NCBI RefSeq assembly: GCF_964204645.1
Contig: NC_134032.1
Coordinates: forward strand, 2,414,416 to 2,478,415
From: Tubulanus polymorphus
Taxonomy: Eukaryota; Animalia; Nemertea
Length of the DNA stretch: 64,000 nucleotides
Direction of reading: 5' to 3'
Shown: positions 2,401 to 37,009 of the stretch, in pieces
Numbering within the stretch: position 1 is the stretch's first letter
How the letters are laid out: every line of letters starts with the position of its first letter
Program-made: the position numbers and the translations under genes
The notes under the pieces: model-generated
What the model saw: the letters and a program-made list of their open reading frames with translations, nothing else
What the model was told of the DNA's origin: nothing
Database searches by the model: none

Positions 2401-2530
2401 AGTAAGCAGCCAAAAGTTTAACGTACCCCGCTTGGTTGGTGTGTATTGATTGGCCTTTCGAGCTATGAAAATGACTTTTGATCTCACTGTACATGTTTTT
2501 CTGAATCATCATCCCGAAATCCACCACAGG

Positions 2531-16372: not shown

Positions 16373-16482
16373 GCACGGGTATCCCCGTGGGAAAACCCGT
16401 TTTCTATTTATAGTAAAAATGAAGAAATTCCGCGTTTTTGGAAAATTCCGCGATTCCGTCTTTCCGCGATATGACAACACCG
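16373..16482 (-). mobile_element. Orphan TIR of the CGGTGTTGTCAT (MULE-like) family
   Basis: Near-identical to the reverse complement of 5633-5740. Confidence 0.85.
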
Positions 16483-16569
16483 AAGAGCGAGGGTGCTGCC
16501 TGTACCAAGAGACCAAAGGAAACTGAGCTCCAGCAAAAGGATACATTTTCGAGTAAATAAGGAACAAAC
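16483..16569 (-). pseudogene. Opsin-like GPCR TM4 fragment (probable continuation of 36923-37009)
   Basis: FTRKCILLLELSFLWSLG followed, after one frameshift, by QAAPSL. Resembles the opsin WxxSLxWAAPPLFGW pattern. Confidence 0.4.
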
Positions 16570-16639
16570 TATGGTGGCTGATTAGGGCCAAGTTAAAAAA
16601 AAAAAATTTCGTGCAATATACCATGCAAAAAATATATTG

Positions 16640-17736
16640 CTTCGTTTCTGCGTCCGTTTCTGCGCGGCGCAAAAACGAAATTTACCGCGCTAAAACGCGC
16701 CAAAACGAGCGCAGAAACGAAATTTCGTTTTAGCGCCCGTTTTGGCGCGTTTCTGCGCGGTGATTTCTCGTTTTTGCGCCGCGCAAAAACGAAGTTCGTT
16801 TCTGCGTCCGTTTTTGCGCCGCGCAAAAACGAAATTTACCGCGCAGAAACGCGCCAAAACGAGCGCAGAAACGAACGTTCGTTTTAGCGCCCGTTTTGGC
16901 GCGTTTTAGCGCGGTGATTTCTCGTTTTTGCGCCCCGCAAAAACGAACTTCGTTTCTGCGTCCGTTTTTGCGGGGCGCCAAAACGAAATTTACCGTGCAG
17001 AAACGCGCCAAAACGAGCGCAGAAACGAACCTTCGTTTTAGCGCCCGTTTTGGCGCGTTTTAGCGCGGTGATTTCTCGTTTTTGCGCCGCGCAAAAACGA
17101 ACTTCGTTTCTGCGTCCGTTTTTGCGCCGCGCAAAAACGAAATTTACCGCGCAGAAACGCGCCAAGACGAGCGCAGAAACGAACCTTCGTTTTAGCGCCC
17201 GTTTTGGCGCGTTTTAGCGCGGTGATTTCTCGTTTTTGCGCCGCGCAAAAACGAAGTTCGTTTCTGCGTCCGTTTTTGCGCCGCGCAAAAACGAAATTTA
17301 CCGCGCAGAAACGCGCCAAAACGAGCGCAGAAACGAACCTTCGTTTTAGCGCCCGTTTTGGCGCGTTTTAGCGCGGTGATTTCTCGTTTTTGCGCCCCGC
17401 AAAAACGAAGTTCGTTTGTGCGTCCGTTTTTGCGGGGCGCAAAAACGAAATTTACCGCGCAGAAACGCGCCAAAACGAGCGCAGAAACGAACGTTCGTTT
17501 TAGCGCCCGTTTTGGCGCGTTTTAGCGCGGTGATTTCTCGTTTTTGCGCCCCGCAAAAACGAACTTCGTTTCTGCGTCCGTTTTGCGGGGCGCAAAAACG
17601 AAATTTACCGCGCTGAAACGCGCCAAAACGAGCGCAGAAACGAACTTTCGTTTTAGCGCCCGTTTTGGCGCGTTTTAGCGCGGTGATTTCTCATTTTTGC
17701 GCCCCGCAAAAACGAACTTCGTTTCTGCGTCCATTT
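16640..17736 (+). repeat. Left subterminal array, ~7 x 154-bp CpG-rich palindromic unit
   Basis: Exact 154-bp period (track ORFs recur at 16730, 16884, 17038, 17192). Built from GCGCNNAAACG motifs in both orientations. Confidence 0.95.
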
Positions 17737-18376
17737 TTACCACGTGGTGCAGTCCCGAGCCGTGCATTCTAGGTCACAACGGCACCACGTTCGGGGCCCA
17801 TCTCTAAAGTTCAACACTTCATCCTAAAACGTAGCCTATTTTAGAGGCCAAGGCACTAATTCACTTACTTGACTAACTAGCCCCCACTTCCCGAAATCGT
17901 GGAAAAACAAGAAAACTAAATTGAAAGTTTATTGACGGCGTGAAAAACATTGAATTGATCAGTAAGCCCATTAATGGCGAAAAAATTATTAAATAGAAAA
18001 TATATCATGAAATTTGTCTAATTACAATAAACGCCATATAATTCAAAATTTTGTTAGGTCTATCTAAACGCCGATATTGATGCCCAGTGCACATCGAGTT
18101 ATGAACTCCCTTGAGTTTTTATTTTCGAAGATCTAATTCATGGTTGCGTGCTTTTGGAAACAGAATGGTTCAACTCGATTTATTTTCAAATTAAACGATT
18201 AACTCTGGCATCATAGTGTCTGGGCCCTTCTATTCTCATCTAATAGAAGTGTCATTTTTCTGTAAAAGAAGGGTGCTCTTTAAAATCATCGGGAAGAGGG
18301 TTTCGAGGACTAGAAGATATTCGTTTTCTATAGAAGTTTTGAGACGACCCCTGTATCGATCGCCTTCTTCGCAATC

Positions 18377-18412
18377 ATGGACGCTGTTGAGGTGAGCTTT
18401 TTCTCTTGTTAT

Positions 18413-18443
<31 letters not shown>

Positions 18444-21400
18444 GATACTTTATCAGTGACCCGATTTTATTGTGGTCATCTCAAAGGAACTACTCAATAC
18501 TATACGTATATATTTTCATCGTCTGTTGGCCTACATTGATTTGGGATATAATAGCACGTGCGTACCGGTATGTTAACCAGGTAGCCTACGTTGCTATGGA
18601 TATCGCGCTGGAAACCCGAAAAGGGCGCTGCCGGTCAAAATTTTCCCGGGCCTCATAGAATTGGTAAAAATGAATAAATCAAAGGCCTTTAAAGCAAAGA
18701 CAATTGTAATTTTACAAAACTATCCGTGATAGTGAGGGCCCGGTCCATAATTTATATATCCGAAGTGTACGGTAATTCCCGATGGCGATATCGGAGTTAC
18801 TATGCTCCGACGTGTGCTCCGACGGCTCCAAATCACACTCCTTTTCTGTGTCAATTTCGGTTCCAGCAACACGTCAAGGTCGTATGAACCCAGAAGTAAA
18901 TTGTAATTCGTTTTTCAGCTTGTGGATATATTACAGGAACTTGGTCTCGGGCAATTCATTAGTATATTCAAAGAACAGAAGGTAAGTAGTAGTGCTGGCC
19001 TGGCTCAGATTGCTAACAAGTAGTTAATATGTAATAGATGAAATCTAGATAAGTGTAATAAATCTAAATAATATATTTTTCTGCAAGAAAATTTACCGAA
19101 AATTCCCTAGGAAAACATTATTAATACAATTAGTTACAAAATTGATTTGAAAAAAATTTTTCTGTCAAAATATCGCGCGAGCCGGGAATGTACGGTTCAA
19201 AATAAATGGTGTACGTGGCTGAGAGTTCCATTTTTGGTGAGAAAGGGGCGGCAACTACATGTTTTGCCGACCGCGACGTTGCTGCTCGAGCGAGGTGCCT
19301 GTTCGCCGCAAGGCTTTAAGGCAAATCGCTTCTACAGGGACTCTCATCGAGGTTTAAGGGTCAAACGACATTAAATCTGATAAAAGAAATATATTTCAGA
19401 CACATTGTAGTATCCACATATACGCGTCCCATCTATTAAGTTGTAGCTTATGGGCTATAGCTGTTATTTAATCAATTCATATCTTTACTCTAGATCGGCT
19501 TAGAAGATGTAGAGATGTTGAGCGATGAAGATTTTTGTACGATAGGAATCACAACGGTTGGTGACCGAAATCGTCTGAAACAACGATGCAGAGTAGCTCG
19601 GAACAGTACTGGTAAGTGATCTGATTATACTAAGAATTTGTTCTATTATTAATCTCTCATTAATCTACATTTGCCTAATTCTAAAAAGTAGAAACAGTTC
19701 ATGCATTAATCTGTGGATTCTGATTGTGAAAAATATGGAGCCGTGCATAAAGTACGTATGCCCATAGGGGAAGGGGGGTTTTAAAATCCGTACAAAAACG
19801 TACAGGGGGAGGGGAGGGGTGAGCTAAAAGTGTACATACTTTCTAAGGGGGGAAGTTTATTATGATTTTTACAAATATCCCCTATGTTTCTTGGGATTTC
19901 CCAGGAATTTTCACTTTGTCGATACGGTACATCGTCGTCGGAGCTCTGATGAAGGCTGGAGAATTTTGCCTTCTTTAAACCATGAATCCTGAAAAATTTA
20001 GTTTTATAGGGAGGGGGGTTATTTAGTATTTACTGAAGTATTTACTCAAGTGGGTTATAAAAATGTACAGATAGCGTACATGGGGGGAAGGGGGGTTAAA
20101 AATACCCAGAAGTCAAGCGTACGCACTTTAAATGGATAATTTTAAAATTTGATTCCAGCATTTTACTATATGAATTCTTATTTCAGGGACAAGTTCAAGC
20201 AGCGTCCTTCACAGACTTCACTCGTACCGGCGACTGAAAACTAAACAAGGCGTAAGCAACAAGGATAAAGCAGCTGAGAATAGTAAAATAGGAAACCAAA
20301 ACGCTGTCAAAACAACTTACAAAATTCGAATTGGGTGGAAACATGCGAAGGCAAACGGCAAATACGAACTGGTGCCAATCAGTAGAGGAGGAGGATCGTT
20401 TAAATTGGACTTAGAAAAATCCCTCAGTTACGAAGAACTAAAACAAGAGTTACAAAACTATTTTCTTCCGAATGGTTTGTCACGAGCCAATAATGTACAA
20501 TGCTCCGATCTTACGGATGTTTACGTCGGTGATTTTACTGGGAAGTCCGTACCAAATCTTATAAATGGAGAACCATTCTGTCTCGGGACTTATGCGACAT
20601 CGGTGAACAATTTTCCCATAAGACTTTATCTACATACGCGTTGTGAAGAACTGTCGACACATGAAGCAGATACGGACCCTTTATCAGCTGTCGGATCTCA
20701 TCAGCCTTCGGTCACCAGTCAACCTAACCAGTCAACCCCCTCACAGTCAGCACTCGGTCAAACAATTGGAAGTTCAATATCAGCATTCGGATCTCATCAG
20801 CCTTCGGTCACCAGTCAACCTAACCAGTCAACCCCCTCACAGTCAGCACTCGGTCAAACAATTGGAAGTTCAATATCAGCATTCGGATCTCATCAGCCTT
20901 CGGTCACCAGTCAACCTAACCAGTCAACCCCCTCACATTCAGCACTCGGTCAAACAATTGGAAGTTCAATATCAGCATTCGGATCTCATCAGCCTTCGGT
21001 CACCAGTCAACCTAACCAGTCAACCCCCTCACAGTCAGCACTTGATTTCACCACTGGACTCTCTTACCCGCCTTTCCAAACCGGTCAACCTAACCAATCA
21101 ACCCCCTCACAGTCAGCACTCGGCCAAACAAATGGAAGTTCGATGTCAGCATTTCTTTTCTCTTCTGACGAGTTTCGCCCCCCTGAAATTCATCAGATGA
21201 TGGAACAACCAACAACACAGAATCAGCACATTCAGATGAACCAAGTAGCTGTTGCAAGTACTTCTCAACATTCTGCGACTGTTCTCAGTCCAATAGCAGG
21301 CTCGGTTTCAGATCAGGACTCTATTATTGACGGTGCTAGTAGTACAATTATCATTCGTGACACAGACGATCTCATGACACTCAGAGATATATTGAACATG

Positions 21401-23860
21401 CTTCAGCCCGATGAACACGCAAATGGGGTAAATTTGATAAATGTAGGGGACCGCAGTGAGGCACTCTACGTCGGATTTCGAGCTGCTTTAAGAAGACAGT
21501 GGTGCGCCCGAAACAGATTAAACGTATTGTTTGAGGCGGAATTTGCAATTGATGGAGGTGGTCCAACGAGAGAATTTCTTACTTTATTCGTCAAACAGCT
21601 GAGTAATTCGTGTTTGTTCGCTGGAAATGAAGAGAAAAAATTCTTGGCTTTGAGCGCATCAGGTGAATATCTATCGGCACATCATTTCATCTCAAAAACT
21701 CATACAGCTCCCAAAAATTGTTGTTTATATAATCACATACTAATCACTTGGCATCATTCAACAGCTTATTGGTAAGAATGATTAACCTGTAGTTTACCAT
21801 CGCGAATCTCTGGAAAAATATTTATTACAGTAATTGGTGACACTTGTCTTAAACAAGGACGGCTCAGTATGCATTATGCTAGACTGACAGAAATGTGTAA
21901 AAGGAAGAAAAATTAAACAAAAATAATTTATACATTGTAAGTGTATCACAGAATGATTAATTAATTGTATTCCATTAATTCAAGCCGTTGAAAAGCAGTA
22001 TTATCTGGCAGCTGGACGCATACTTTCGTACAGCATAACGCACAGAGGACCACTACCAACCTTCTTGGATCCATTTACGTATGCGATGATTGCAAACGAG
22101 ACTAGAGGGAATAAGATACCGTTGGAAGCTTGCGGGGATGAGAAAGATACTTTAGAACAGGTAAGGAAATGTCTTCTTAATCTGATACATTTTTATAAAG
22201 AAAAAATTACGTCTTGAACGTAGCTTAGAAACGCAGCCAAGCCTTCATGTAAACAAATTTCCCCAGATGATGGGCAAGATCAAGTAAACATGTATTCACA
22301 GCAACAGTTATCTTTTTTCTCTGAATTCTATCAAAAATACATGTATTTTTGATTCTATAGATAGCAGGATGTGAAGATGAAGAAAGCTTCAACGAGATGG
22401 TGGCAAAACATGAATGCGTCATCTCAGTTTCTGGCTGCATGACTCTGGCAACATATAACAACAAGGAGCGACTAATCAAAGGACTATGTAAATTTCTGGC
22501 TGTTCAGCGACTGAGTGTACCTTTGGCACAGTAAGTTCAGTGCCTTTATATTATATATGTTGTATTTTGTGGACACAAGTATTATCTCAAAGGCAATTCG
22601 GACATTTATAATATAGCTATATAGATTCACACCTCAATTATTGTCTTCCTGTTTGGGGCCTATGATTTCTAAACAATAAATCAATACGTTAACTAAATTG
22701 CGGAAAAAGCTGTTCGGGTAATAACTAATTCAAAATACAATGCTTCGATCTCACCGCTTTTTGAAAACTTTAAAATCTTGAAATTTGATAACATGATAAA
22801 CCTGGAACTTATTATGCTCGTATATTCTTTCCTTAGGCCTACTCCCAATGGCAATAAGTAATTTAATAGTAATTCAGTTCATCATCCATATAATACAAGT
22901 GGCTGCAACATTCGAGCCATTACATAAATAAAGAATAATTAGGGTTAACGATACACAGCAGGGCTACATCAGTGGACAGACTACATGTTTTTTCACTTAA
23001 ATAATTCTTTAAAAATGGCCACCAAACTATAGAAATTAAAAATGCATTATATAATTGATTGAGTCGATGAGATGCCACGATTTGCTTTAAAATGTATCAT
23101 TCCTTTCAGGTTAAAATCTGGATTGGAGGATAATGGCGTGTTATTTTACATAACCGCATACCCACATCTTTTTAAAGATGCGTTTTGTAAACTGGAAGGC
23201 AGAAAATATACAGCCGAGGATGTGTATGCTCTATTCGACATGGAACAAACCTACTGGAGCGAACCAGAATCAAATCGATTACGTTTGGAAAACAGAGCAT
23301 ACGGATATTTCAAGGAATATATCCTTGATATCGAAGGTAAATTTAGCCATGTTGTAATTTTTAGCCCACTTGGGACTTTAGCTGTAATAGACAGTAATAC
23401 CAATTTTTAGCCCACTTGGAACTTGAGTCTCAGCGGGCTATTGCGTTCACTTTTCATTCGTCCCTAGACAGAATCCAGTTAGTTTGAGAAATTTTGAAGA
23501 CGCTTCTATGGATCCTTTTGATATTTGGTGGTTCTAAAATGTGGTTGCTTTACAACCAGGTGGCGTTTTTCATAGCAAATTAAGTATTTTTCTGATTAAA
23601 TTTGTTTTTTAGGTGAATTCATTACGGATTTCATACGTTTCATCACTGGCCTAGAAGAGATTCCAGTTTTAGGGTTCAGCCCTAAATTAACCCTGCAGTT
23701 TCGACATCGGGGAGATATTGGTGACTGTACTAAAGACTTTCCCATTGCAAACACATGCGGCAATGTTCTTTCGGTGCCGGTACACAATTCTTACGAATTG
23801 TTTAAATTTTATATGGATGCAGCAATAAAAAATGCCAGCCAAACTTTCACTGAGGCATAG
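18377..23860 (+). CDS. SAM-domain HECT E3 ubiquitin ligase (G2E3-like HECT), 8 exons, 830 aa
   Basis: Exons 18377-18391, 18919-18981, 19494-19611, 20187-21662, 21985-22160, 22361-22530, 23110-23336, 23613-23860. All introns GT-AG with matching phases; 2493 nt with no internal stop. SAM: LVDILQELGLGQFISIFKEQKIGLEDVEMLSDEDFCTIGITTVGDRNRL. HECT: AIDGGGPTREF, YYLAAGRIL, FITG..IPVLGF, FPIANTC, C-terminal FTEA*. Confidence 0.85.
18415..18442. repeat. (CAT)n microsatellite in intron 1 of the HECT gene
   Basis: Direct reading. Confidence 0.9.
19736..20137. mobile_element. Harbinger-like MITE in intron 3 of the HECT gene
   Basis: Imperfect TIRs GGAGCCGTGCATAAAGTACGTATGC / GCGTACGCACTTTAAATGGA, with G-rich subterminal tracts. 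Confidence 0.55.
20693..21153 (+). repeat. Coding 96-bp (32-aa) tandem repeat, ~3.7 near-identical copies plus a diverged partial copy
   Basis: GSHQPSVTSQPNQSTPSQSALGQTIGSSISAF units start at 20693, 20789, 20885 and 20981. Confidence 0.95.
23357..23470 (+). mobile_element. Helentron/HINE-type 5' end fragment in intron 7 of the HECT gene
   Basis: TTTTAGCCCACTTGG...CAGCGGGCTATTGCGTTCACTTTTCA matches the reverse complement of 26625-26680. Confidence 0.6.
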
Positions 23861-24586
23861 GTCATAACCGTGATTTGCTGGATTATAATCTGTTAAACTG
23901 TTTGTAGACTTTACTTCTAGTTACATGTGTGACACTGCATTATCTACTGTTTTAAGTAAAAGTGATTATGCTAGCTTAGATTTTATGGTATTGATTACGG
24001 TTATAAATGCACTAAAATGTTTTTACAATTCATTGATGGACGACTAAGTATTATGGAAACGAAACTTAGGATAATCTACTGTTTAACATTAACTTTTTTT
24101 TTATTGATTGCCTAGGGATGACTAAGCAATCTGTTTAAAATACTACCTATTGTGTGCTAGCACATCAAAGTATGAATGTTAAGGTCATTTTATGAAGACA
24201 AAGTTATATGCCTGACACATTTTTTAATGTTTATTTCCCCACAGTGGTTGAATATAACAATAAAATTTATTGCCAGTTAATAGAAATATAATCGCTTTCT
24301 CTTGATGTTTGTCGGCATTCTGGTTGAGACTGTTTGTTCTTCAAGAGAAACCATTAAGTTAAACAGAACAACTCAAAACTAAAGTCAGTGTTGATCATGA
24401 GTTGGATATGCTGAGACTTGATTGTGTTAATAGATTAGATTAGCAGAATTAGATGCCAATTGGTCAATTTAACCCACCACTATTGATTGATAGTAGTTGA
24501 ATAAACACTCTAATCCGTGTAGACTGTACATAATTGAAGAAGTCCCACAATTTGAATTTTAAATAATAGAATTTATTAAAACGAGA

Positions 24587-24628
24587 CCACAACGTTTTGG
24601 CTGTTGATTAACAGCCATCATCAGGTGG
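24587..24628 (-). ncRNA. Degenerate minimal hammerhead ribozyme motif at a Penelope-like end
   Basis: CCAC-CUGAUGA-U-GGCUGUU/AACAGCC-AAAAC-GUU-GUGG. Stems I and II pair, but the core GAAA is mutated to AAAA. Confidence 0.5.
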
Positions 24629-25019
24629 AATGACCAGAAATACAAGTAACCTAAAGTATATAAACTCGCATGATGAAAAACAGAAGCTAATGTGTCAGAA
24701 CTAAAGAAACAGACAGCAATAAAAACATCCAAGGGTACCAGTAGGACTTCTTCAATTAACCATTGATTGAGTTTAGATACCATTCAAATATGTTTCGATA
24801 AGAACAACATGTAAAGGCTTTGCCCAAGACAACTGCCTTCAATAAATAGATATTTCCACCAAGAGACGTATTCTAACATTGTTGAATATGTGTCCGCCAG
24901 CAAGTCTACAAGAATAAAGATCTAATAAGAAGTATCTTGGAAAATATGAATTTATTCTGTCTTTATCTTCCAATATATACATACAGTACTAACATGTATA
25001 CAAAATACATTTTACACAT

Positions 25020-28000
25020 TTATCTAAACTTAGATAATAGCCAATCATACATGTCGCAAGCTTCGATCGAGGTTGAAGGAAATCTTCCAAAATTGCTTTG
25101 CGCGAGAATTCCATCACATAACGCGGAAAATTGTGGATCACACCCTCGAGTTCGATTTGGGATTTTGCAAAAATCCCGGCGTATTTGATCCAGTATTCCC
25201 GTATCAATGGCCACTTTGTAATCATCTGTTCCTAGAATACAAATTCAGATAAACATACTGGTCATTATACGAGAACCATAAGTACAATGACCATATCAAA
25301 GACAACAATGCTATAAATGCGTATGGTCCAGGGGTGGATTTAGAGGGACGGAAGCGGCGTACGCCCCGCCCGCCCCCTTATTATTGCCGAGATACGTTTT
25401 GAAAAAGACCCCAGGTGTGGATTTTGTCCTCATGCCTGAAAATCCTGTATTTCAGAATTTTGTAGGAGAACGGCCTCCAGACCCCCTCGGGGGATTTAGC
25501 CGGATGCCTCCCGCCTCCCTTATCCAAAATCCGGGATCCTACCCTAGTTTCCACATAATAATAAATTCCCTCACTAGAGATATATATTCAAACGTTTTAT
25601 GTAGGCAAATGATAAATGGTATAATTTGTGACATTATTTTAATATAACTCACCAAACACCTCTGGAGTGAAGTACAATAAATCAGGTTTACCACTCGGTA
25701 CTTCCATGTTACTCTGAGGACCAATTACATGTGTGTTCCATTCCCTTTGGAAGTCAAGCAAGTCGTTGGTGATCAAATAAAAAAAACAGTATCGTAGCGT
25801 GTCACTGAAAATGGTAATACTTGAAAATATATCCATATATCATATTAATGATACAACTAGGGGACCAGGGACACCACGCCCACTTGGAAAGTGGTTTGAA
25901 AAACAATCTGAAAATTTCAATATTCAATAGACCTAGTGAACATATCAAGAAAAGAATGACCTTGAAACTGACCACAATCATTCAAAATGTCGCAAGCTAC
26001 AATTTTGCAATTGATTGTGGTTACAAAATATGCCTAGGGACAAATACAATATGAAAATACTAAGTTAATCGGCTATTCAACGCCCCTGGTGACCATAATA
26101 CAAAAACCAATGACCTTGAAATTCGACACAATCATAGAATGAGTCCGGAAAACCATTTTCTATCTACAAATGAGGACTGTCGACACTAAGATGGCTGTCA
26201 ATTGCGTCACGCTTGACTGATCGAACAATTTGTTTAAGAGCCCTTCTCAAAATATACCCATCACCAATTTCAATGAAAAATGGCAAACCATTCAGGTCTC
26301 CGAATTCTGGTCAAAAATGAACTATTTGGGCATAAAAAAGGTCACAGGATGGCCATATTGTGTCCGATCGACCCAATTTTTCTTATGCTGATGCACCATA
26401 GGGGGATACAAACATATCTGAAAGATCAAGATTGAAGTGTCTTTAAAATTGCCCTTAAAAACTCCAAAAATGTGTAAGTGCGATTTTGGCGAACAAAAAT
26501 AGCCGCGAGTCGGCCATCTTGAATCTGACCGGGCCAGTTTTTGGGCTGAAGATGTGTTTAGGGGAGATACATGTATAAATCAAAGATCAAGACAATCCAT
26601 GCATTGAAGCTGGATTCCATCTACGGGTGAAAAGTGAACGCAATAGCCCGCTGGGACTAAAGTCCCAAGTGGGCTAAAAACAAACATTCAGTGATTAAGT
26701 CTTACATATGAATAGGATCAGCATTCGAAAACAAACCACGATCCGCCATGTCTTTGAACAGATTCATCCAATATTGGCCAAGTGAATGTCTCAGTGTTCG
26801 CCACCACCTCTCTATTCGCTGAAGGAAAATAACATTTTCTATTTATAGTTTGTGTGCGCACGTACCCTTTTTGGTGTTTTTGCTGATGTAAATAATGTAC
26901 ATATTTACAGGGAACTAATAAAATGACAAAACAAATCAAATAGGTATGCAAAAGCTTCAGGGGCGGATCCAGGGCATATATGGAGTGGTAGCACCTGATG
27001 AAAGGGTGTCGTCGACTCTGGCCGTCCGAGTGGCGACTATCAATTGATCAGATCTAACTCATGAATTTCCATATCACTAACTGAATATATTTTACTAAAA
27101 CTATAAGGTTATGATTATATACGCATGCGCAGAGGAAAGAGAGACGTGGGTGATGCCTGGAAATAGTCGTTTATCTAAAGAGAGTCGAATTACCGTAATG
27201 CCTGAATGAAAGTGTACTGATAAGAGCGGTTCAAACTATAAACTAGAGAAAGAATGGTGTCAAACTGAATGGCGTCACCGACATCCTCCCCCGCCGGAAG
27301 ATAGGTACAAGATATGAAATAGTCGCAGCGTAGTTCTAGTGTCTTTTTATAATATCCGCATATGCAATTTGTAGTTGAACAATTAAAGTTCCAGGTGTAA
27401 ACGCGTAAACAGTTACTGGCGTGATTAAAATTACTAATGTTTATATCATCCGGTGATATGAGTTATCCACGGTTGTAGGTCACTGTGTTCCATTCCATAG
27501 GTCATGGCTGCGCGCGTTGAAATAATCCACGAATATGTAATCACCGATACACTTTGATTTCATTTGAACATGTAACATATAACAAACTATTTAATCTAAT
27601 ACTAATCTACGCTAAACTAAAATATATGCGAGATTGAACGAGATGCACACAATTTTCAACATAAGAATTTTTATGTAAACTTAAACACGTTCGAATGTAA
27701 ATTCCCAACTAAGTCGAATCCGAATCATGATCACTATCAGTCGCCAGTTGAGCAATCTTAGCTCGAGCTTTGTGTGCTGCTTCACGACAGGGTCTTTTTA
27801 ATGGTTTGGGTTTGTCAGATGCTGATTTGTTTTGTTTCACAATCACATCTACACTAAATTCAAGTGGATATAATTTTGACACTGCTCGACAAGTTGTTCC
27901 GTTGATGGTTTTGACCCTAGCCGCGCGGATACCGCCGTCACTACTTTCGAGGGTTTCGGTAATAATTCCGAGTTTCCATTTGTGACGAGGAGTGTCTTTG

Positions 28001-31000
28001 TCGTTAATCACTACCACATCTCCGTTTTTTATTGTGGCCTTTTTGTGATGTCGCTTTTTAATTTCAGTTCTATGTCGTTCGCGGAGTACCGCTAGGTACT
28101 CAGATTTAAAGCGGTTTTGAAAATCAGTAATGAGCTTGGCTCTATAAAAGGCCATCTTTTGCAACGTTATGCTCGTGTTGTTCAAATAATCCGCATCAAA
28201 TATTTCAGATTCCCCGATTTCTTCGTTAGGTATCAACTCGACGTCACGTCCATAGATTAACGAATTAGGAGTGACTGGTTTTAGCTCGTCAATTTTTTCT
28301 TCGACGTAAGTTAGGGGCCTATTATTTACTATAGCCTGAATTTCTTTAACAAGCGTTTGTAATTCTTCAATTGTAACGAGAGCATTCTTAAGCGTTTTCT
28401 TGACAGCTCGTTTTATCGTACCTACGCACCGCTCGTGAACTCCCGCCATCCAAGGGGCTTGGACTGGAGCATACTTGAAGGCAACACGCTTTTCAGCAAA
28501 ATGGTTTTGTGATTGAGACGAATTTGCGATTTCAAATAAACGCTTTATTTCAGCCTCCCCCGCGACGAAGGTTTTCGCATTATCGCTGTAGAGTATATTT
28601 GGAGTCGAATAGGCCGTACAAAAACGTCGAAACGAGCGTATGTATGAATCTACGGACAGGTCGTTAACCACTTCTAAATGCACCGCACGGGTTGTACAAC
28701 ACGTGTACAAACATATGTAACATTTACCTACCTCTGTCACCCCTTTCCGGACATTCAAATGGCCAGTGAAATCCACGGCAGTGGCGGAGAAAGGCCTGAA
28801 ATTGGTCAACCTGAAGTCCGGAAGAGGTGGGGGGTCAGGGGCGGTATAGGGCTTACCGTACAGCTTTTTGCATGTTACGCATCGATGGAGAACTTTCTTG
28901 GCAACGAATCTGACCGCCGAGATCCAATATCGCTTCCGAACATCGCATATTGTCATACCAACACCGTAGTGTAGGACATTTTCGTGAGATTGGCGTATGA
29001 TGAGCGTAGCTAGGTATGAGTTGTGTGAAATGAGAAGAGGGTTTACCTGTTTCGCATTCTTAAGTCGACCTACACAACGAAGGTAACCACCATGTTTGTC
29101 TTTTTCGATACCTAACTGCCTAACAAGAGCAGGGCACTTACCTTTGTTTGTTTCGATGTATCTGAAAACATCAGGGTATGTTCTACGTTGGTGGCTAAGT
29201 ATCAGTGTCATTTCAGCTGAGTACATGTCAGCAGCAGACAATTGACATCGTTTGTGTGTTAGCCCTTTTTTAAAGGCTCGCTTGACCAACGCTATAACCT
29301 TTATGAGCTTGGTCCAATCAGTGAATTCGTTGACATCAATAATGTTGTGAATACCTTGTTTGTCGGAATCTTGCGTTTCTCGAGTGATGAATTCATTTTC
29401 GTATTCTGTTGCTGCTGCGAGGATTGTGACCCCGATATCCTCATTAGCAACGGGAGGGGCCAAAGAGGCTAGCATCCACTGAGGGCCTGTGAACCACATA
29501 GATCTTCTAAGATTGTCAAAGGACATGCCTCTAGAAATGATGTCAGCCGGATTGTGTTCTGAAGCCACATGCGTCCAGCGATCCACAAGGCTCCCATTCT
29601 TGATCTTTTCGACTCGATTCTTTACAAATTGGGTCAAATCCTTGTTTGATTTCAGCCAACACAGAGCTATAGTTGAATCGGTAAAATATCTTACCTCAAT
29701 TGTTTTGAATTGTGATGAATATGCGTCTATGACTGTGTTTACATATTTGACAGCCATAGTCATCGCTTCGAGCTCCAACTTTGGAACAGTCCATCCGGAT
29801 TTGTTTTTGGACACGACTTTGTTTTTAGAACCTATAATCTGTACATTTCCACCTTGTTTTGCATAAACCACACAGCCGATGGCTACATTCGGAGCAGCAT
29901 CGGAGAATACCATGAAATGTACCTTCTGATTGGTGTCCATACCAAGCCAACGCGGCACTATGATTTCATTCGTCTGTCGTAAATTTGACCTAATGACATC
30001 CCACTCACCCGTTTCTTCTGTTGATAACCTGTCATCCCAGTCTTTTCCAGTCAGCCACAGTTTGTTGATAAATATCTTAGCTAATACGATAACTGGGCCA
30101 GCTAAGCCAAGTGGGTCATAAACCGAGGCTGTTTGCGAAACTACAGACCGTTTAGTATTTGTTGTTGTTGTAACCAACTGAGCCTGAGATAACGAAATGA
30201 GGTCAGTTCTAGTATTCCAGCTCATTCCTAGAACTGACACCTCTTCTGTGGGGTACTGAATTTCATCGATTTTCGCTGCATCGCTTACCTGTTTCGAGTT
30301 CGAGGCCCACTGACGTAAGTGGAAACCTGCGTCGTTGAGAATTTTGTTCGATGATTGATAATATGACAGAGCATCGACCTCTGACATCACACTCGTGAGT
30401 AGATTATCAACGTAAAATCTGTTGATCATATCCGCTGCGATCCAAGAATCGCTCAGTTGCAAATGCTTATTCAACACTGCCGCTAGCATGAACGGGCTAG
30501 CAGTAGAACCGAAAATAACGGTATTGTGTTGGTAAGGAACGATCGGATTGTTTGGGTTATTGTCCTTGTACCAGAGAAATCGTACATACCTCCTGTCGCC
30601 TTCCTGTAGTTTCACTGATAGAAATGCCTTAGCTATGTCTGCCGACAAACCAATTCTACCAATTCTGAATTTCATTATGAGGGTAGGTAGATCAATGAGC
30701 ATATTTGGACCCTCATACAGACAGTCGTTTAATGATGGGGAGCCTGCGTTAGCCGCAAAGACGATCCGTAAAGGGGTTGTGTTACTCTCCTTTAGTACAG
30801 GGAAATGTGGCAAGTAGTAACAATCCCCTTCCTTGACAGAATCAGGGTTTGGTAATTCAGATACTGTACCTCGGTTGCGATGTTCTTCCATTACTTTTAT
30901 GTACTGGTCAAGTTGATTGGTTCTTTGGAGACGATTGGTGATCTGAAACAATCTAGCCCGGCATTGTTCCAGATCGGTACCCAGCTCATCATGTTCATGT

Positions 31001-34000
31001 TTCCATGGGAGTGGGGCCCAGTAACACCCATGTTTATACTCTATCTTACCTTGATACTGCGTTATGAAACTTTCTCGATCGAAAGTGTTATCCCCGGGAA
31101 ACTCAGCTATGTTTTGGTGTAGATAGTCTCCTATGCTTTGGTCATCCAACAGTTCCCGATTGTTAATTGATGAGTCTGTAAGGGTACTTACCGTGTATGC
31201 ATTTGTACTAGACCTATTTGTATCAATAGGGGTTAACAACCTGTGTAAGGGCCCGAAAACGAAACTACCGAGATTCGTGTGTTGTAACTGGGGACCGTCC
31301 GGTACGTCCTCCAGATTGTTCTTTAAGAATAGATGATGATGGGCAGTACCGATTAATAAATCGACCACGAATACCTCGGATTTGAAGTTATCTGCGAGGT
31401 TTGCATTTGAGATTTGTTCGTACTTTAGACAATCAGCCCAACCGTGTCGATAGATGGGACGAATTATCTCATCAGTGACAGCTACGTCGATGAATTTAAC
31501 GCCATCAGATGTTCTAATGCCTATGGGTGCCATATCAAATACGCGCTTCGTAGAATGGCCACCGAAACCATTTACCTTTTTCGATAGTTGGTACGACGGT
31601 ACCAATTTGAGAGCTTTGGCAACAGCGGAGCGAATGTATGACATAGAGGAACAATTGTCGAGCAGGGTATTGGCTTCCAAAGTGTGATTGTGATATTCAA
31701 TACTCACCTGCCCCGTTTGCAGCAACACAACCTCATTTTGATAATCATGATTTTGATTACTGACCATGTTGGTAGTATCCAATGCGTATTTTCCGAAATC
31801 GATACTGAAATTCATATCCTCGCATGATTTGACATTATTTATATCCGATGTTTGAACGATTTTATCCAGCGCATGACCTTGGTTGACGAATGTACATCCG
31901 GAGACGGTTTGTTGATGTTGATCTCGGTGAATTGACGTGTGATGTGTCTTCTTGCATATTTTACAGCGATTGCGGTTTTGACAGTCCTTTGCTTGATGAT
32001 TTGGTTTGAGACAGTTTCGACATAATCGTCTTTCGATTACCCTTTGAAGACGTTCTTCGATTGGTAGTTGACAGTTTGTTGGGTAGTGTTCACCGTCACA
32101 AAATGTGCATTTCAACTGTGTCTGTTTAGTGACGGATACCAATGATGTCGCAGTACCGGATCTCGAATTTCGATACTGATGTTGGTACTGTAGAGATTTT
32201 TCACTTACATTTTCACCCAGATTGTCGAGACACTCTTCGTATGTGTTAATGAATTTATCCAGATCAAAGTTATCTTTTTGACCGCATGTGCCCATTTTTT
32301 CTAATAGATTACGCGGTAGTTTTTTCTCTAACGATGTTATGATGAATGGTGCACACGCGTTAACGTCAACGCCCAGATGTTTTAATGATCTTACATTCGC
32401 GTTGATCTTATTTAGAAATTGTGACAGTCCTGAATAGTTCGAAGTTGTTGATGGAATATCATAGATTTCCTGAATATGCGCTCGAACAATTTTTCGATTT
32501 TGTCCGAAACGATCTTTCAGAATTGATGTCAATGTCTCGAGATTCGAGCCGGATGCGAATAGTCCCTTAACTGCTTCGAGGGCGCTTCCCCGAAGCTGAC
32601 CGACGATATAGTTGAATTTTGTTATATCGCTGAATTTTCCTGCGATGACGTCGCATTCAATCGTTTCCCAGAACGCTGTCCACTGGGTGTAAGTTCCGTC
32701 GAATACAGGCAGTTTCAATTTAGGTAATCTCGCCGTAAATTGATGATGATCATTGTCGTCTGTTACCCGGACAGTTGATGTTTCGGGTTGTTTAGACTTC
32801 GTGTGGTTTTCAATATATCGTTTGGTTTTCAGAAGTTTAACTCGTTCTTCTGATCGTCTTGCGTTTGATGTTTTCGTTTCGTTTTTATAGTCGTCGTCGT
32901 CGTTTCTAATCATCTCTTGGATTTGATTAGAAACGTTTTCCCGTGTTTCGTGTGCGTCTTGTAATTCTTCCAGGCGAGCTTCGAGCTCAGTCCCCTGGTC
33001 TTCGGTTACCGTTGTTTGCTGCATTATTTGCAGAATAACAGAGTATTCCGCATCAAATGCGTCGATGGTTGATTCTCTTTTTCTGATGAGTTGTTCGATC
33101 TTCGTCATGATGAATTGAATTTTCTTAACTTTTGACTTCGTTTGAGTTAGTTGACTTTTTTATCCATTAATGCATTGCGTTGTGTATTGATGATGATGAT
33201 TAGTATCCTGGTCACGGCACCAATGTCGTCGACTCTGGCCGTCCGAGTGGCGACTATCAATTGATCAGATCTAACTCATGAATTTCCATATCACTAACTG
33301 AATATATTTTACTAAAACTATAAGGTTATGATTATATACGCATGCGCAGAGGAAAGAGAGACGTGGGTGATGCCTGGAAATAGTCGTTTATCTAAAGAGA
33401 GTCGAATTACCGTAATGCCTGAATGAAAGTGTACTGATAAGAGCGGTTCAAACTATAAACTAGAGAAAGAATGGTGTCAAACTGAATGGCGTCACCGACA
33501 AAGGGCGATAATTATTGCAAAGAGGCAATATCCACTGGTAGTGAGCGCCGAAGACGCGAAGCCAAAGGGGGTTTCCTCCCTCTGAAAATAAGCCCCTGCA
33601 GATGCAATTTCAAGCATTTGAGCTTCTTTCAAACAAAGAAAAACATATTAGGGGACATATTAGGCCATTGGACGTCCTCAGGTGGTACCGAATTTATGAT
33701 GGGAAAGGTTTTTGGGGCCCAACTAAAAGTCAAGCGGGTAGCACGTGCCCCAGGTGCTACCTCATGGATCCGCGCCTGAGCTTTGGTTATAAATTTATTT
33801 TAGCTAGCAGTGTTTTTAAGGTTGGTTATTACGGATACATGTCAACAATTAAATATATGTAATCAGAAAGTGATGATTGAAACTTTTTCATTGTAAAAGA
33901 GTGAAATTTTTATCGTCAACGAACCTGATTACTAGTAGATCTTCCGATTACTACACTGGCTTCATTTGTATGGTCCGTAAGGAAAGCTTCTTGAATGGAT

Positions 34001-34397
34001 GCCAAAATACCATTTTCGGTCCCCGCATCAATCCTGACGCAACGAGGTACAGCTAAAAAAAATCAAATAATAAAAAAAACATGAATACCCAATTGTTCTT
34101 GACATGTATATATGGCATTGCATTGTAATAGTGAAGTCATTGTATTTCTCAAAGCAGTCGTTGTAAGGCAATAACAATTTAATATTTTTCATGCATTATT
34201 TCGATTAGAGTATCGAAAATATTGGAAAATTGAGATTATATTTTCAGGTTTGTTGCATAATGACAAAATACCTACCTTTTATTTGCTCTATAAAATCGAC
34301 AAAATACCAGCCAATAACAGCAGGGTCATTATTTGTATTGCTTACGTTGAGCCAAAGAATCCTCCTAGAATAACTATACATTGGAGCAATACCTAAG

Positions 34398-34455
<58 letters not shown>

Positions 34456-35460
34456 CAGATCAAATGATAGAACAATCCAGGCCAGCATATGGAAAAACAA
34501 CCGATTACCTACCCATCTATGGCTCCATGTATAGCAAAGCCATACGGCTTAAGCTTATCATGCCCATCAACATGTATCAAATAATTAGGACCTTTGGCTG
34601 AATAATTACGGCGACGGAGGATACCACTAGCTCTTTCCCTGACTCCTTCTGGATCAATCAAGCGCTGGACACCCGAAACAACTGTCCTGAAAATAATTCA
34701 TCAATGCTGGGTTAAAATATAGGTTAACAGTCGATGTATCACTCCTGATAATTACGGACCATCATCGTACCTAGGAACACGAATTCCATAGCGATTCCTC
34801 AATCGACTAATCATGGCTCTGTAGCCCAAACAGCTACCACTGCCACGTACCTCTTCCTATAATTAAAGAAACCTATATTACTGGCAGTAATTAACTTGTC
34901 AGAATGATATCTGAATCTCCATTCATACATTCTTGATATTACGATGACACATTTTGATATTAATGAAACACTAGAAATTAAATATGGATAGGTCTCACCG
35001 TATAATTACCTCTACTACACTGACAACTTCATGTAATTGATAGTTACATCTCCTTTTTAATCCCAGTTTGTTGAGTCGCCGTTTTAATGTACGCTCACTG
35101 CAAAGAGAGCAAGGTTTTGAGAACGATTCTGCGAATATTTTAGCAAAAATGCATAACTAAGCCTAATCGATCTCTCAGCATGTAACATTTATTTAGGGGC
35201 TACATAACCTCTTACCTCATTGCCAATCCAAAATAAGTCTCGAGTGAGTGGCAAATTTCCTTATTAGTAAATCCGTCGTTGAACAATTGTGTGATGATAT
35301 TGTCCTCTATAAAGAAATATAACCAGTTGTCAGAGTGGATTAGAATACCAAGAATTAATATTTTGATGAAATTTCGAAATATCAGTATTGACAATCAGAC
35401 AATTTCCATACCTGAGCTGACATCATCATCCTGTCCTTCTTCTTGTAGAAAACACGACAT
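25020..35460 (-). CDS. DDE integrase-core transposase with N-terminal HTH (Clr5-like) region, 10 exons, 396 aa
   Basis: Exons 35460-35412, 35306-35216, 35097-35010, 34856-34771, 34686-34513, 34373-34276, 34052-33925, 26818-26706, 25804-25653, 25231-25020. GT-AG with matching phases; 1191 nt with no internal stop. Motifs SERTLKRRL, LGYRAM, GPNYLIHVDGHDKLKPYGFAIHGAIDGYSR, PRCVRIDAGTEN, SNQRIERWW (D...D-36-E), WNTH. Confidence 0.88.
25328..25545. mobile_element. Small CAGGGG-ended MITE in transposase intron 9
   Basis: CAGGGGTGGATTT ... GGATCCTACCCTAG degenerate TIRs, similar to the 26958 family ends. Confidence 0.45.
25855..26680 (-). mobile_element. Helentron-associated non-autonomous element (HINE/DINE-like) in transposase intron 8
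   Basis: 5' TTTTTAGCCCACTTGGGACT..AGTCCCAGCGGGCTA stem. 3' subterminal IR CAAGTGGGC, then a short GC-rich palindrome-like segment and CTAGTT. Confidence 0.65.
27709..33108 (-). CDS. BEL/Pao gag-pol polyprotein, 1799 aa
   Basis: DUF1759-type gag, three Cys/His knuckles, protease LLDNCS, RT with YVDN, RNase H FSDA, integrase HHCC + DFTG/SDNA/ERC. Confidence 0.97.
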   Translation of the reverse strand: MTKIEQLIRKRESTIDAFDAEYSVILQIMQQTTVTEDQGTELEARLEELQDAHETRENVSNQIQEMIRNDDDDYKNETKTSNARRSEERVKLLKTKRYIENHTKSKQPETSTVRVTDDNDHHQFTARLPKLKLPVFDGTYTQWTAFWETIECDVIAGKFSDITKFNYIVGQLRGSALEAVKGLFASGSNLETLTSILKDRFGQNRKIVRAHIQEIYDIPSTTSNYSGLSQFLNKINANVRSLKHLGVDVNACAPFIITSLEKKLPRNLLEKMGTCGQKDNFDLDKFINTYEECLDNLGENVSEKSLQYQHQYRNSRSGTATSLVSVTKQTQLKCTFCDGEHYPTNCQLPIEERLQRVIERRLCRNCLKPNHQAKDCQNRNRCKICKKTHHTSIHRDQHQQTVSGCTFVNQGHALDKIVQTSDINNVKSCEDMNFSIDFGKYALDTTNMVSNQNHDYQNEVVLLQTGQVSIEYHNHTLEANTLLDNCSSMSYIRSAVAKALKLVPSYQLSKKVNGFGGHSTKRVFDMAPIGIRTSDGVKFIDVAVTDEIIRPIYRHGWADCLKYEQISNANLADNFKSEVFVVDLLIGTAHHHLFLKNNLEDVPDGPQLQHTNLGSFVFGPLHRLLTPIDTNRSSTNAYTVSTLTDSSINNRELLDDQSIGDYLHQNIAEFPGDNTFDRESFITQYQGKIEYKHGCYWAPLPWKHEHDELGTDLEQCRARLFQITNRLQRTNQLDQYIKVMEEHRNRGTVSELPNPDSVKEGDCYYLPHFPVLKESNTTPLRIVFAANAGSPSLNDCLYEGPNMLIDLPTLIMKFRIGRIGLSADIAKAFLSVKLQEGDRRYVRFLWYKDNNPNNPIVPYQHNTVIFGSTASPFMLAAVLNKHLQLSDSWIAADMINRFYVDNLLTSVMSEVDALSYYQSSNKILNDAGFHLRQWASNSKQVSDAAKIDEIQYPTEEVSVLGMSWNTRTDLISLSQAQLVTTTTNTKRSVVSQTASVYDPLGLAGPVIVLAKIFINKLWLTGKDWDDRLSTEETGEWDVIRSNLRQTNEIIVPRWLGMDTNQKVHFMVFSDAAPNVAIGCVVYAKQGGNVQIIGSKNKVVSKNKSGWTVPKLELEAMTMAVKYVNTVIDAYSSQFKTIEVRYFTDSTIALCWLKSNKDLTQFVKNRVEKIKNGSLVDRWTHVASEHNPADIISRGMSFDNLRRSMWFTGPQWMLASLAPPVANEDIGVTILAAATEYENEFITRETQDSDKQGIHNIIDVNEFTDWTKLIKVIALVKRAFKKGLTHKRCQLSAADMYSAEMTLILSHQRRTYPDVFRYIETNKGKCPALVRQLGIEKDKHGGYLRCVGRLKNAKQVNPLLISHNSYLATLIIRQSHENVLHYGVGMTICDVRKRYWISAVRFVAKKVLHRCVTCKKLYGKPYTAPDPPPLPDFRLTNFRPFSATAVDFTGHLNVRKGVTEVGKCYICLYTCCTTRAVHLEVVNDLSVDSYIRSFRRFCTAYSTPNILYSDNAKTFVAGEAEIKRLFEIANSSQSQNHFAEKRVAFKYAPVQAPWMAGVHERCVGTIKRAVKKTLKNALVTIEELQTLVKEIQAIVNNRPLTYVEEKIDELKPVTPNSLIYGRDVELIPNEEIGESEIFDADYLNNTSITLQKMAFYRAKLITDFQNRFKSEYLAVLRERHRTEIKKRHHKKATIKNGDVVVINDKDTPRHKWKLGIITETLESSDGGIRAARVKTINGTTCRAVSKLYPLEFSVDVIVKQNKSASDKPKPLKRPCREAAHKARAKIAQLATDSDHDSDST
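33205..33222 (-). promoter_or_regulatory. Primer-binding site complementary to the tRNA-His 3' end
   Basis: TGGTGCCGTGACCAGGAT lies one base inside the 5' LTR boundary. Confidence 0.85.
34402..34452. repeat. (CA)n microsatellite in transposase intron 5
   Basis: Direct reading. Confidence 0.95.
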
Positions 35461-35904
35461 GATCTACCGCGCGAGGGGTTTATTTGTGGGATTTGGGAGG
35501 CCGTAGCGGCGTAGGAACCCTTATAGCGCGTCGTCAATATCACACGTATCAATGGGGCAGTCAGACGTTCAACTGAACTGACCTTATTGTATTGTATTAA
35601 AACTACACGCGCATGCCCTACTCTCTTCTCAACCGTGAATATAACCACTATTCTTGACGCACTGGCTACCGCATCAAAACGTCAATTTTTACAAATATTT
35701 AAGTTGAATTTGTTTACTTTTAAGTGAAGGCAGTGCTACTGGCTTTCGTAAAAAATCAGAAAATCACCGATAAAGGAAATTTTATTGCGTATAAACGTAA
35801 CTCTGAAAATTAATTAGAAAATAATTGGTATAATAATACAACGTTTTGAGGCCGTAATTAGTATCACGAGATGAACCCTGGCGCCACCATCCGACCAAAA
35901 TTAC

Positions 35905-36852
35905 CGCGCATGAACGAAGAAACGAAGTTCGTTTTTGCGCGGCGCAAAAACGAGAAATCACCGCGCTAAAACGCGCCAAAACGGGCGCTAAAACGAACGT
36001 TCGTTTCTGCGCTCGTTTTGGCGCGTTTTTGCGCGGTAAATTTCGTTTTTGCGATGGCGCAAAAACGGACGCAGAAACGAACTTCGTTTTTGCGGGGCGC
36101 AAAAACGAGAAATCACCGCGCTAAAACGCGCCAAAACGGGCGCTAAAACGAAAGTTCGTTTCTGCGTTCGTTTTAGCGCGTTTCTGCGCGGTAAATTTCG
36201 TTTTTGTGCCGCGCAAAAACGGACGCAGAAACGAAGTTCGTTTTTGCGCGGCGCAAAAACGAGAAATCACCGCGCAGAAACGCGCCAAAACGGGCGCTAA
36301 AAAGAACGTTCGTTTCTGCGCTCGTTTTGGCGCGTTTCTGCGCGGTAAATTTCGTTTTTGCGCCGCGCAAAAACGGACGCAGAAACGAACTTCGTTTTTG
36401 CGGGGCGCAAAAACGAGAAATCACCGCGCTAAAACGCGCCAAAAGGGGCGTCAAAACGAAGGTTCGTTTCTGCGCTCGTTTTGGCGCGTTTCTGCGCGGT
36501 AAATTTCGTTTTGGCGCCCCGCAAAAACGGACGCAGAAACGAAGTTCGTTTTTGCGGGGCGCAAAAACGAGAAATCACCGCGCTAAAACGCGCCAAAACG
36601 GGCGCTAAAACGAAGGTTCGTTTCTGCGCTCGTTTTGGCGCGTTTCTGCGCGGTAAATTTCGTTTTTGCGCGGCGCAAAAACGGACGCAGAAACGAACTT
36701 CGTTTTTGCGCGGCGCAAAAACGAGAAATCACCGCGCAGAAACGCGCCAAAACGGGCGCTAAAACGAAATTTCGTTTCTGCGCTCGTTTTGGCGCGTTTT
36801 AGCGCGGTAAATTTCGTTTTTGCACCGCGCAGAAACGTACGCAGAAACGAAG
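35905..36852 (-). repeat. Right subterminal array, ~6 x 154-bp unit, inverted relative to the left array
   Basis: Reverse complement of 16640-17590, including unit-specific variants at mirrored distances. Confidence 0.95.
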
Positions 36853-36922
36853 CAATATATTTTTTGCATGGTATATTGCACGAAATTTTTTTCTTTTAAC
36901 TTGGCCCTAATCAGCCACCATA

Positions 36923-37009
36923 CGAAGCAGCGATCCAGCGCAATTTCCATCGTCGAGTATATCGAAATGAATCCCATCATCGTCATCGTGAAGCCGTCGA
37001 TCGAGCAGC
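36923..37009 (-). pseudogene. Opsin-like GPCR TM3 exon fragment cut by the transposon end
   Basis: CTAATTTAG acceptor, then GCSIDGFTMTMMGFISIYSTMEIALDRCF, which has the TM3 Cys and a DRY-like motif. Confidence 0.6.

Follow-up and report, generated by a model that had tools for sequence, protein, structure and literature searches.

DNA transposons are commonly thought to require a transposase alone. A locus in the nemertean Tubulanus polymorphus raises the question of whether an element of this kind can also possess, as a gene of its own, a ubiquitin ligase. The locus lies in a stretch of 64,000 nucleotides that we analyzed as a whole (the window; NCBI RefSeq assembly GCF_964204645.1, contig NC_134032.1, forward-strand positions 2,414,416 to 2,478,415), in which positions 16570–36922 constitute a single DNA transposon of the IS3EU/GingerRoot type with the ends TATGG..CCATA. 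Between the inverted arms of this element are exactly two host-type genes, one encoding a HECT-domain protein (plus strand) and the other a DDE transposase of the rva_4 type (minus strand), which are arranged tail-to-tail with a gap of about 1.16 kb. A preliminary description of the locus had proposed that exactly two convergent spliced genes are enclosed here, and that the ligase is a dedicated accessory gene rather than a random capture. Our analyses sustain both proposals, in that the HECT gene is multi-copy within terminal inverted repeats, is linked to related transposases elsewhere, and is part of a single collinear element. We think it very probable that the ligase is a long-kept accessory gene of the transposon, selected for the benefit of the element.

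The ends of the element are well defined. The inverted arms at 16570–17434 and 36058–36922 pair in a single register over 865 nt with 97% complementarity, in agreement with the near-perfect inverted ends that had been noted at the outset. In their full extents the left terminal inverted repeat (about 16570–17738) and the right one (about 35910–36922) are each some 1.0–1.17 kb long and consist of an array of six to seven units of 154 bp, with a G+C content above that of the surroundings. The left repeat starts with TATGGTGGCTGATTAGGGCC and contains approximately seven tandem 154-bp subrepeats from position 16640 onwards; the right repeat, which ends in ..CCATA, has one unit less. The left arm shares 97–98% identity with the arm on the right and with those of the sister copies considered below. 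Once a BEL/Pao retrotransposon that has inserted into the element is subtracted, its length is 13,859 bp, in line with the 13.9 kb or so estimated originally.

These features place the element with confidence. It fits every structural criterion of the IS3EU superfamily, having an rva_4-type DDE core, TA..TA termini, terminal inverted repeats and dispersed copies. That it is of the IS3EU type had been suggested at the outset; the TA..TA ends and 6-bp target duplications named in support agree with published accounts (PMC10045372, PMC12730594), and the duplications are present at sister copies, at short derivatives, at copies of a second family (family B) and at a copy from the abalone Haliotis, and are absent from the window copy itself. 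It is a single DDE transposon of autonomous type within the IS3EU/GingerRoot superfamily.

Other copies in the same genome establish that the two ends and the two genes travel together. The terminal 76 nt of the element occur at at least 41 genomic places. Two of the copies are full sisters of the window copy, one on C6 (14,095 bp, with GATTCG on both sides) and one on C2 (12,653 bp, with CCGAAT on both sides), each thus flanked by a perfect 6-bp duplication. The two align with the window copy collinearly from end to end, at 98–99% identity, and in all three of these full copies of what we call family A both genes are intact in every coding piece. Dispersed copies with the same two genes and 6-bp duplications, which had been put forward as a means of checking the idea, therefore exist, and the HECT gene is not single-copy: it is present in three full copies, always inside the inverted repeats. 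A partial copy on C12 holds the 5′ transposase exons, and at least eight short derivatives of 0.28–2.3 kb consist of arms only. Perfect 6-bp duplications flank the derivatives L006, L007, L009, L003 and L008 (the duplications seen at short derivatives being CCATAA, GGTATG, GTATGG, AGTAGC and GAAAAT). With copies that are 98–99% identical and short derivatives that bear 6-bp duplications, the family has been active recently.

The window copy lacks a 6-bp target duplication (acaaac at 16564–16569, cgaagc at 36923–36928), and paralogues of its flanks on the same chromosome continue differently beyond the junctions. These are the observations that would speak for a different account of the locus, namely that the inverted ends stem from separate insertions which by chance enclose two unrelated genes. 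For the left flank there are three same-chromosome paralogues that continue as CGACTTAG.. beyond the junction (L042–L044). The right flank has a 98% identical paralogue 1.5 Mb away (L041, C8:3929000-3938999, at 2843–2897), which continues for 53 nt before it abuts a further terminus of the family. Our best guess is that the flanks of the window copy reflect recombination between copies after insertion, or a deletion beside one end, and that the copy is without a duplication because its flanks have been rearranged. (Note that an exchange between two copies should have left reciprocal junctions, for which no exact match was found.) Either event accounts for the flank mismatch better than two independent insertions do, and the latter are disfavored because the interior of the window copy matches the sister copies throughout, from end to end, each sister being bounded by its own perfect 6-bp duplication. 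We accordingly give the notion of independent ends almost no credence; for the element as a unit it is refuted, and the two ends belong to one element, as the collinearity with both sisters indicates.

Several further features of the family's termini and flanks were seen. At five short copies (L003, L004, L005, L008 and L010, on C9, C7, C6, C7 and C1, respectively) the terminal 16 nt (TATGGTGGCTGATTAG) are tandemly doubled at one end, and at two of them, L003 and L008, it is with the outer copy of the doubled terminus that the 6-bp target duplication agrees. A lone right end at C5:9172652-9173126 (L019) and a lone left end at C1:12582844-12583318 (L020) are both flanked by GGATAC; these could be one insertion split between chromosomes, by translocation or through a mis-join, or the match could be due to chance. 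In the left flank of the window copy, a 106-bp unit at 16377–16482 (found also at 5633–5738 and 6690–6795) recurs at at least 40 places on all chromosomes with 97–100% identity, and is a very young short repeat family. Ahead of the window, at C8:2397500-2407499, no sequence resembling either gene was found.

The transposase gene occupies 25020–35429 on the minus strand, with its ATG at 35429 and its stop at about 25020–25022. Its junctions are a sequence-based prediction, and its profile search was done one exon at a time. Conserved coding pieces lie at approximately 35215–35310, 34998–35100, 34512–34697, 33919–34062, 26705–26842, 25642–25839 and 25023–25244. The first D of the DDE motifs is found in HVDGHD (34512–34697), the second in RIDAGTE (33919–34062) and the E in IERWW (26705–26842), and four stop-free pieces together span positions 2–173 of the 194 positions of the Pfam profile rva_4 (PF24764, integrase core). 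Judged by these motifs, the predicted enzyme has an intact D-D-E triad on an integrase-like rva_4 core. All of the pieces are intact in the sister copies and conserved in two more divergent families of the same genome, B and C.

The HECT gene, at 18377–23860 on the plus strand, comprises eight exons with a total of 2493 nt (830 codons plus stop) that encode, in order, a putative SAM domain, a predicted ubiquitin-like β-grasp domain, a set of 32-residue repeats and a HECT domain. When we went through the gene exon by exon, the model proposed initially, stop-free and with consistent intron phases, held up: all introns are GT..AG, and every exon is stop-free in the phase inherited from the preceding one. 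A predicted exon 1 (18377–18391; ATG plus four codons, donor GTGAGC) is followed by exon 2 (18919–18981) and exon 3 (19494–19611), which encode the first and second halves of the putative SAM domain. Exon 4 (20187–21662, 1476 nt) encodes the predicted β-grasp domain (about 20282–20650), the repeats (20586–21153) and the start of the HECT N-lobe, which continues in exon 5 (21985–22160); exon 6 (22361–22530) and exon 7 (23110–23336) follow, and the gene closes with exon 8 (23613–23860), which holds the C-lobe and its catalytic Cys and runs on through the Phe four residues from the C-terminus to the stop codon.

The HECT gene gives rise to spliced transcripts. Contigs of sequencing run X4 show five of the seven GT..AG junctions as joints, and none appear in the DNA-like runs X1–X3 of the same study; the preliminary description had called for RNA sequencing to confirm the splice junctions, and this has been borne out for those five. 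Joints were seen, for example, from 18981 to 19494 (exons 2 and 3) and at exons 5, 6 and 7, and the NCBI spliced model P0001, which starts within exon 4, has junctions identical to those in the X4 contigs. The run type of X4 is not on record; from its coverage, which is limited to the exons of the HECT gene, and from the lack of such joints in X1–X3, we take it to be almost certainly RNA. One X4 contig is without 17 nt of exon 4 (21452–21468), which would shift the frame, whereas DNA-like contigs of the same sample are ungapped; the source of this shorter transcript may be another, unassembled genomic copy.

Domain assignments in the encoded protein vary in strength. On P0001 the full HECT domain spans positions 11–304 of the 306 in the Pfam profile and scores 64.6 bits, the gathering cut-off being 23.9; exon 8 by itself matches with E=5e-12. 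Both the catalytic Cys motif (ANTCGN) and the Phe four residues from the C-terminus (..FTEA) are present. Exons 2 and 3 were searched singly for the SAM domain, and exon 3 matched SAM_1 with E=0.0046, under the cut-off. The domain of about 105 residues encoded by exon 4 is conserved and was modeled by AlphaFold with a predicted local distance difference test score (pLDDT) of 87.5 and a predicted template modeling score (pTM) of 0.80; its best Foldseek matches are ubiquitin, ISG15, UBL and LC3, all of them weak (E about 0.01, template modeling score 0.4–0.6). The repeats are encoded by 96-bp units at 20586–21153. A Pfam search of the HECT-gene exons gave no match to a PHD or RING domain on any of them.

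Is the ligase a fixture of such elements, or peculiar to family A? Two further families in this genome carry the same pair of genes. Family B is represented by a 14.1-kb element on C8 (duplication GTTCAG), in which a gene for a HECT protein with the predicted SAM and ubiquitin-like parts is convergent to the transposase gene, and by a copy on C2 that has lost part of its interior (duplication GGATTG). Like family A, family B has the ends TATGG..CCATA; near-identity with A covers the first 25 nt of the terminus, and the remaining DNA is not alignable with A. At the protein level the transposase pieces of A and B are 38–71% identical and the HECT-gene pieces 39–65%, in the same convergent order. 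The proportion of nonsynonymous differences (pN) between A and B is 0.31 for the HECT gene and 0.28 for the transposase gene, and that of synonymous differences (pS) is about 0.8 and saturated. With a comparable pN and a saturated pS, both genes have been similarly constrained since A and B split. Family C is 9.6 kb long and has at least ten near-identical copies (for example, in L047 and L048, C8:3171500-3191499, at about 1018–10676, and also in L051). Its ligase gene, again convergent to the transposase gene, consists of SAM exons and one 632-codon exon that encodes the ubiquitin-like domain and a divergent HECT domain (36 bits in Pfam, motif ARTCAQ); the SAM match is weak (E=0.078).

The gene pair is likewise found in other species. 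An exhaustive protein search with P0001 retrieved about 1000 relatives at E<=0.001, every named one of which is called 'G2E3-like'. (Word-indexed searches with the N-terminal domain or with the start of the HECT domain found no foreign relatives; it was the exhaustive search that did.) A convergent rva_4 transposase gene lies 0.4–3.2 kb downstream of the HECT gene in six of the nine foreign loci examined. In the nemertean Lineus longissimus the two genes are accompanied by TATGG termini about 17 kb apart. In Haliotis rufescens they form a 12.6-kb element with the ends TACGG..CCGTA and a perfect GTCTTC duplication. In the clam Mercenaria mercenaria the HECT protein encoded next to the rva_4 gene also has a ubiquitin-like domain and a SAM domain (the SAM_1 match being faint). 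The two remaining named species with the pair are fishes, Siphateles boraxobius, with a convergent rva_4 gene, and Scomber japonicus, whose unannotated transposase is 46% identical to that of the sixth locus, in ENA assembly ERZ25066843 (L036), where the convergent HECT and rva_4 genes are both intronless. A linkage of related transposases to HECT genes, the lack of which the preliminary description had named as one possible refutation, is thus seen in families B and C and at these six loci. Relatives can also be multi-copy: in Lineus they occur on four chromosomes, and in Patella an identical protein is encoded at three loci.

Three observations made in passing concern these loci. In the ENA assembly, 1.4-kb inverted repeats with 41-nt periodic units (L036, 1–1372 and 7464–9130) lie upstream of the HECT gene and adjoin a piggyBac-type transposase gene. 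The Larimichthys crocea protein P0008 and the Scomber japonicus protein P0156 (L039) are 98% identical over 546 residues, low-complexity N-terminal regions included; such identity between distantly related teleosts suggests recent horizontal transfer between fish lineages. Finally, the Paramormyrops kingsleyae protein P0041 (1159 aa) joins a SIX1 N-terminal domain to a UBX match (E=2.5e-5) and a G2E3-like HECT domain, and is probably a chimeric gene model in which a host gene is fused to transposon cargo. The UBX match agrees with the β-grasp fold predicted for the ligase's N-terminal domain.

DNA transposons do capture fragments of host genes, and the HECT gene could in principle be a recent chance capture by one family, with no role for the element. 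The layout, however, is shared by three families whose proteins are 40–70% identical and whose DNA is not alignable; it recurs in two other phyla, where both genes lie between element termini and 6-bp duplications; and the reading frames are intact, with pN far under pS. The recurrence of the gene pair across families and species effectively refutes a chance capture, to which we attach a vanishingly small probability. Indeed, the presence of the same pair in genomes of other worms, of molluscs and of fish makes the ligase look like a gene that has been kept for a long time and not like a stray host gene. Found in three divergent families here and at nemertean, mollusc and teleost loci, the two-gene module is old and conserved.

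Some of our results pull the other way. Beside the missing duplication at the window copy, three of the nine foreign loci (in Argopecten, Diadema and Saccoglossus) have no transposase within 10 kb, and family D of this genome, which has an intronless 401-codon transposase gene, shows no obvious second gene. In family C the Phe four residues from the C-terminus is lost and the HECT domain is much more divergent than the transposase, which is as near to that of A as is that of B; the two genes have therefore not kept strictly in step. A tree of 23 HECT sequences, in which linked and unlinked genes are intermixed, fits a group that was ancestrally transposon-borne, without proving it; the tree is star-like at depth, and so speaks neither for nor against a single clade of linked genes or a joint divergence of the two genes. 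When all of this is weighed, an IS3EU element with a conserved ligase accessory module is the best overall explanation of the locus, and we regard it as likely to be correct.

The window copy has itself been invaded. A BEL/Pao long terminal repeat (LTR) retrotransposon occupies 27007–33500 on the minus strand, within the transposase intron between the exons for the second D and the E and in the same orientation as the transposase. Its 277-bp LTRs (27007–27283 and 33224–33500) are 100% identical, a 4-bp AAGG is duplicated at the insertion site, and its open reading frame (27709–33108, 1799 aa) matches Peptidase_A17 (E=6e-36), DUF1759 and DUF5641. With a Pao-type peptidase and polyprotein, identical LTRs and a short target duplication, it has the features of the BEL/Pao group, and it is a very young insertion of about 6.5 kb. 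Since it sits in an intron, the transposase exons are untouched; the transposase transcript of this copy is probably disrupted nonetheless, and with a same-orientation insertion in the intron and rearranged flanks the window copy is probably crippled. Intron 7 of the HECT gene contains another repeat that is foreign to the element family, a short interspersed one of about 130 bp (23400–23530). It has at least 891 candidate genomic places at 83–87% identity, produces a huge depth spike in all runs, and looks like a short interspersed nuclear element (SINE) or miniature inverted-repeat transposable element (MITE) family.

Whether the ligase is enzymatically active bears on what it may do for the element. 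We consider it likely, on the strength of conserved motifs, that the HECT protein has catalytic activity as an E3 ligase. The other view is that the HECT domain is not a working ligase but a localization or binding module, as has been reported for mammalian G2E3, with the SAM and ubiquitin-like parts forming an adaptor that targets DNA or chromatin, much as the Myb-like protein of PIF/Harbinger does. The domain does belong to the highly divergent G2E3-like group that the search with P0001 retrieved, and the family C protein lacks the Phe. Even so, ten aligned species all retain the TC motif at the catalytic Cys and the Phe four residues from the C-terminus, although overall identity is only 30–37%, and a G2E3-like HECT protein of fish has been reported to be an active E3 (PMC13623101). 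A non-catalytic role is in our estimation quite improbable.

We envisage the following. The transposase would bind the conserved TATGG ends along with the subterminal arrays of repeats, and integrate the element through 6-bp staggered cuts. The N-terminal part of the ligase, with its SAM and ubiquitin-like domains, would pick the substrate by recruiting a host protein, for which the candidates are of two sorts, factors of chromatin or small-RNA silencing and factors of the DNA-damage response or of checkpoints. Once recruited, this protein would be ubiquitinated by the HECT domain, which would permit expression of the element or let the cell tolerate the DNA breaks made in transposition. The TET/JBP dioxygenase and alpha-kinase cargo of fungal IS3EU elements offers a parallel for such a part. 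We favor the recruitment and ubiquitination of a host protein as the likeliest role, tentatively and with somewhat less than even confidence.

Alternatively, the ligase may act on the element's own machinery, ubiquitinating the transposase or transpososome so that the strand-transfer complex comes apart, or so that transposase levels are held down, which would be a form of self-regulation. The post-transfer complex is very stable, and many transposons require a factor to remodel it. Two convergent genes that have been co-inherited and expressed over very long times also fit a partnership of their products. A prediction of the complex between residues 100–430 of the HECT protein of the ENA assembly (P0015) and the neighboring transposase gave an ipSAE of 0.02, which weighs neither way on binding. 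We hold action on the element's own machinery to be unlikely, and action on a host protein remains the role that we prefer.

Accessory proteins are known from other DNA transposons, among them the Myb-like protein of Harbinger, VANC of VANDAL elements, the ULP1 protease of MULEs and an OTU protease. The ligase resembles them as the product of a retained second gene of the kind thought to aid transposition or to counter silencing, and some of them touch ubiquitin or SUMO. None of these, however, is known to be an E3 ligase; their action is to bind DNA or to take modifications off, whereas the present protein would add ubiquitin.

Closer relatives of the element are to be found within its own superfamily. 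Published accounts give IS3EU elements TA..TA ends and 6-bp duplications (PMC10045372) and place them in one group with GingerRoot (PMC10045372, PMC6839031); the element described here shares with both an rva_4 DDE transposase, TA..TA termini, 6-bp duplications and terminal inverted repeats. IS3EU/GingerRoot elements are known from fish, cnidarians, a beetle, an acorn worm and fungi, a range that overlaps with our HECT-linked loci. Unlike the arms of GingerRoot, which are 100–150 bp long, those of the present element are about 1–1.2 kb of 154-bp subrepeats, and it has a second gene, for a HECT protein with predicted SAM and ubiquitin-like parts, of which the IS3EU and GingerRoot papers searched make no mention. 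Fungal IS3EU elements have the ends TAYGG..CCRTA and carry an alpha-kinase gene opposite to the transposase gene, sometimes with a TET/JBP gene in between (PMC12730594). They are alike in terminal motif, in 6-bp duplications and in having a gene for a protein-modifying enzyme opposite the transposase; they differ in that their cargo is a kinase and a DNA dioxygenase, as opposed to a ubiquitin ligase in animals. Fungal TET/JBP genes have, moreover, passed among superfamilies (PMC12730594), whereas we have seen the HECT gene only beside rva_4 transposases. A link between IS3EU and HECT was not found in the literature searched, a search outside which lie the Repbase and Dfam entries, where the second open reading frame may be recorded. 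In that literature, no paper combining HECT, DNA transposon and transposase is about such an element, and the GingerRoot paper makes no mention of ubiquitin or of a second open reading frame.

The nearest named HECT relatives of the transposon ligase are G2E3 and the 'G2E3-like Metazoa', which have been placed in the fast-evolving HECT class IV in a study that leaves transposons unmentioned (PMC3673628). Canonical G2E3 is a single-copy host gene whose product has N-terminal PHD/RING-like fingers, in contrast to the transposon ligase, which has a predicted SAM and ubiquitin-like N-terminus, is multi-copy and lies inside transposon ends. Gains in G2E3 copy number have been reported, for example to 20 copies in a hadal sea cucumber (PMC9700323), as have unclassified fish repeats that match G2E3 (PMC5638112), and both may reflect transposon cargo. 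A much broader proposition, which we regard as doubtful, is that all animal 'G2E3-like' HECT genes were originally the accessory gene of an ancient IS3EU lineage, encoding an effector ligase that would tag a host silencing or DNA-damage factor for degradation. The 'G2E3 expansions' (PMC9700323) would then be transposon copies, and the stand-alone genes, perhaps including the HECT domain of G2E3 itself, would have been domesticated.

The few accessory genes that are known, such as Harbinger Myb, VANC and fungal TET/JBP, have each revealed how elements fight or exploit their hosts. The ligase offers a direct experimental handle of the same kind, as its catalytic Cys can be mutated and its substrates trapped. 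If our interpretation is right, this element, with a ligase kept in nemerteans, molluscs and teleosts, would be the first eukaryotic cut-and-paste element to write ubiquitin marks itself, a strategy used by many viruses and bacterial effectors.

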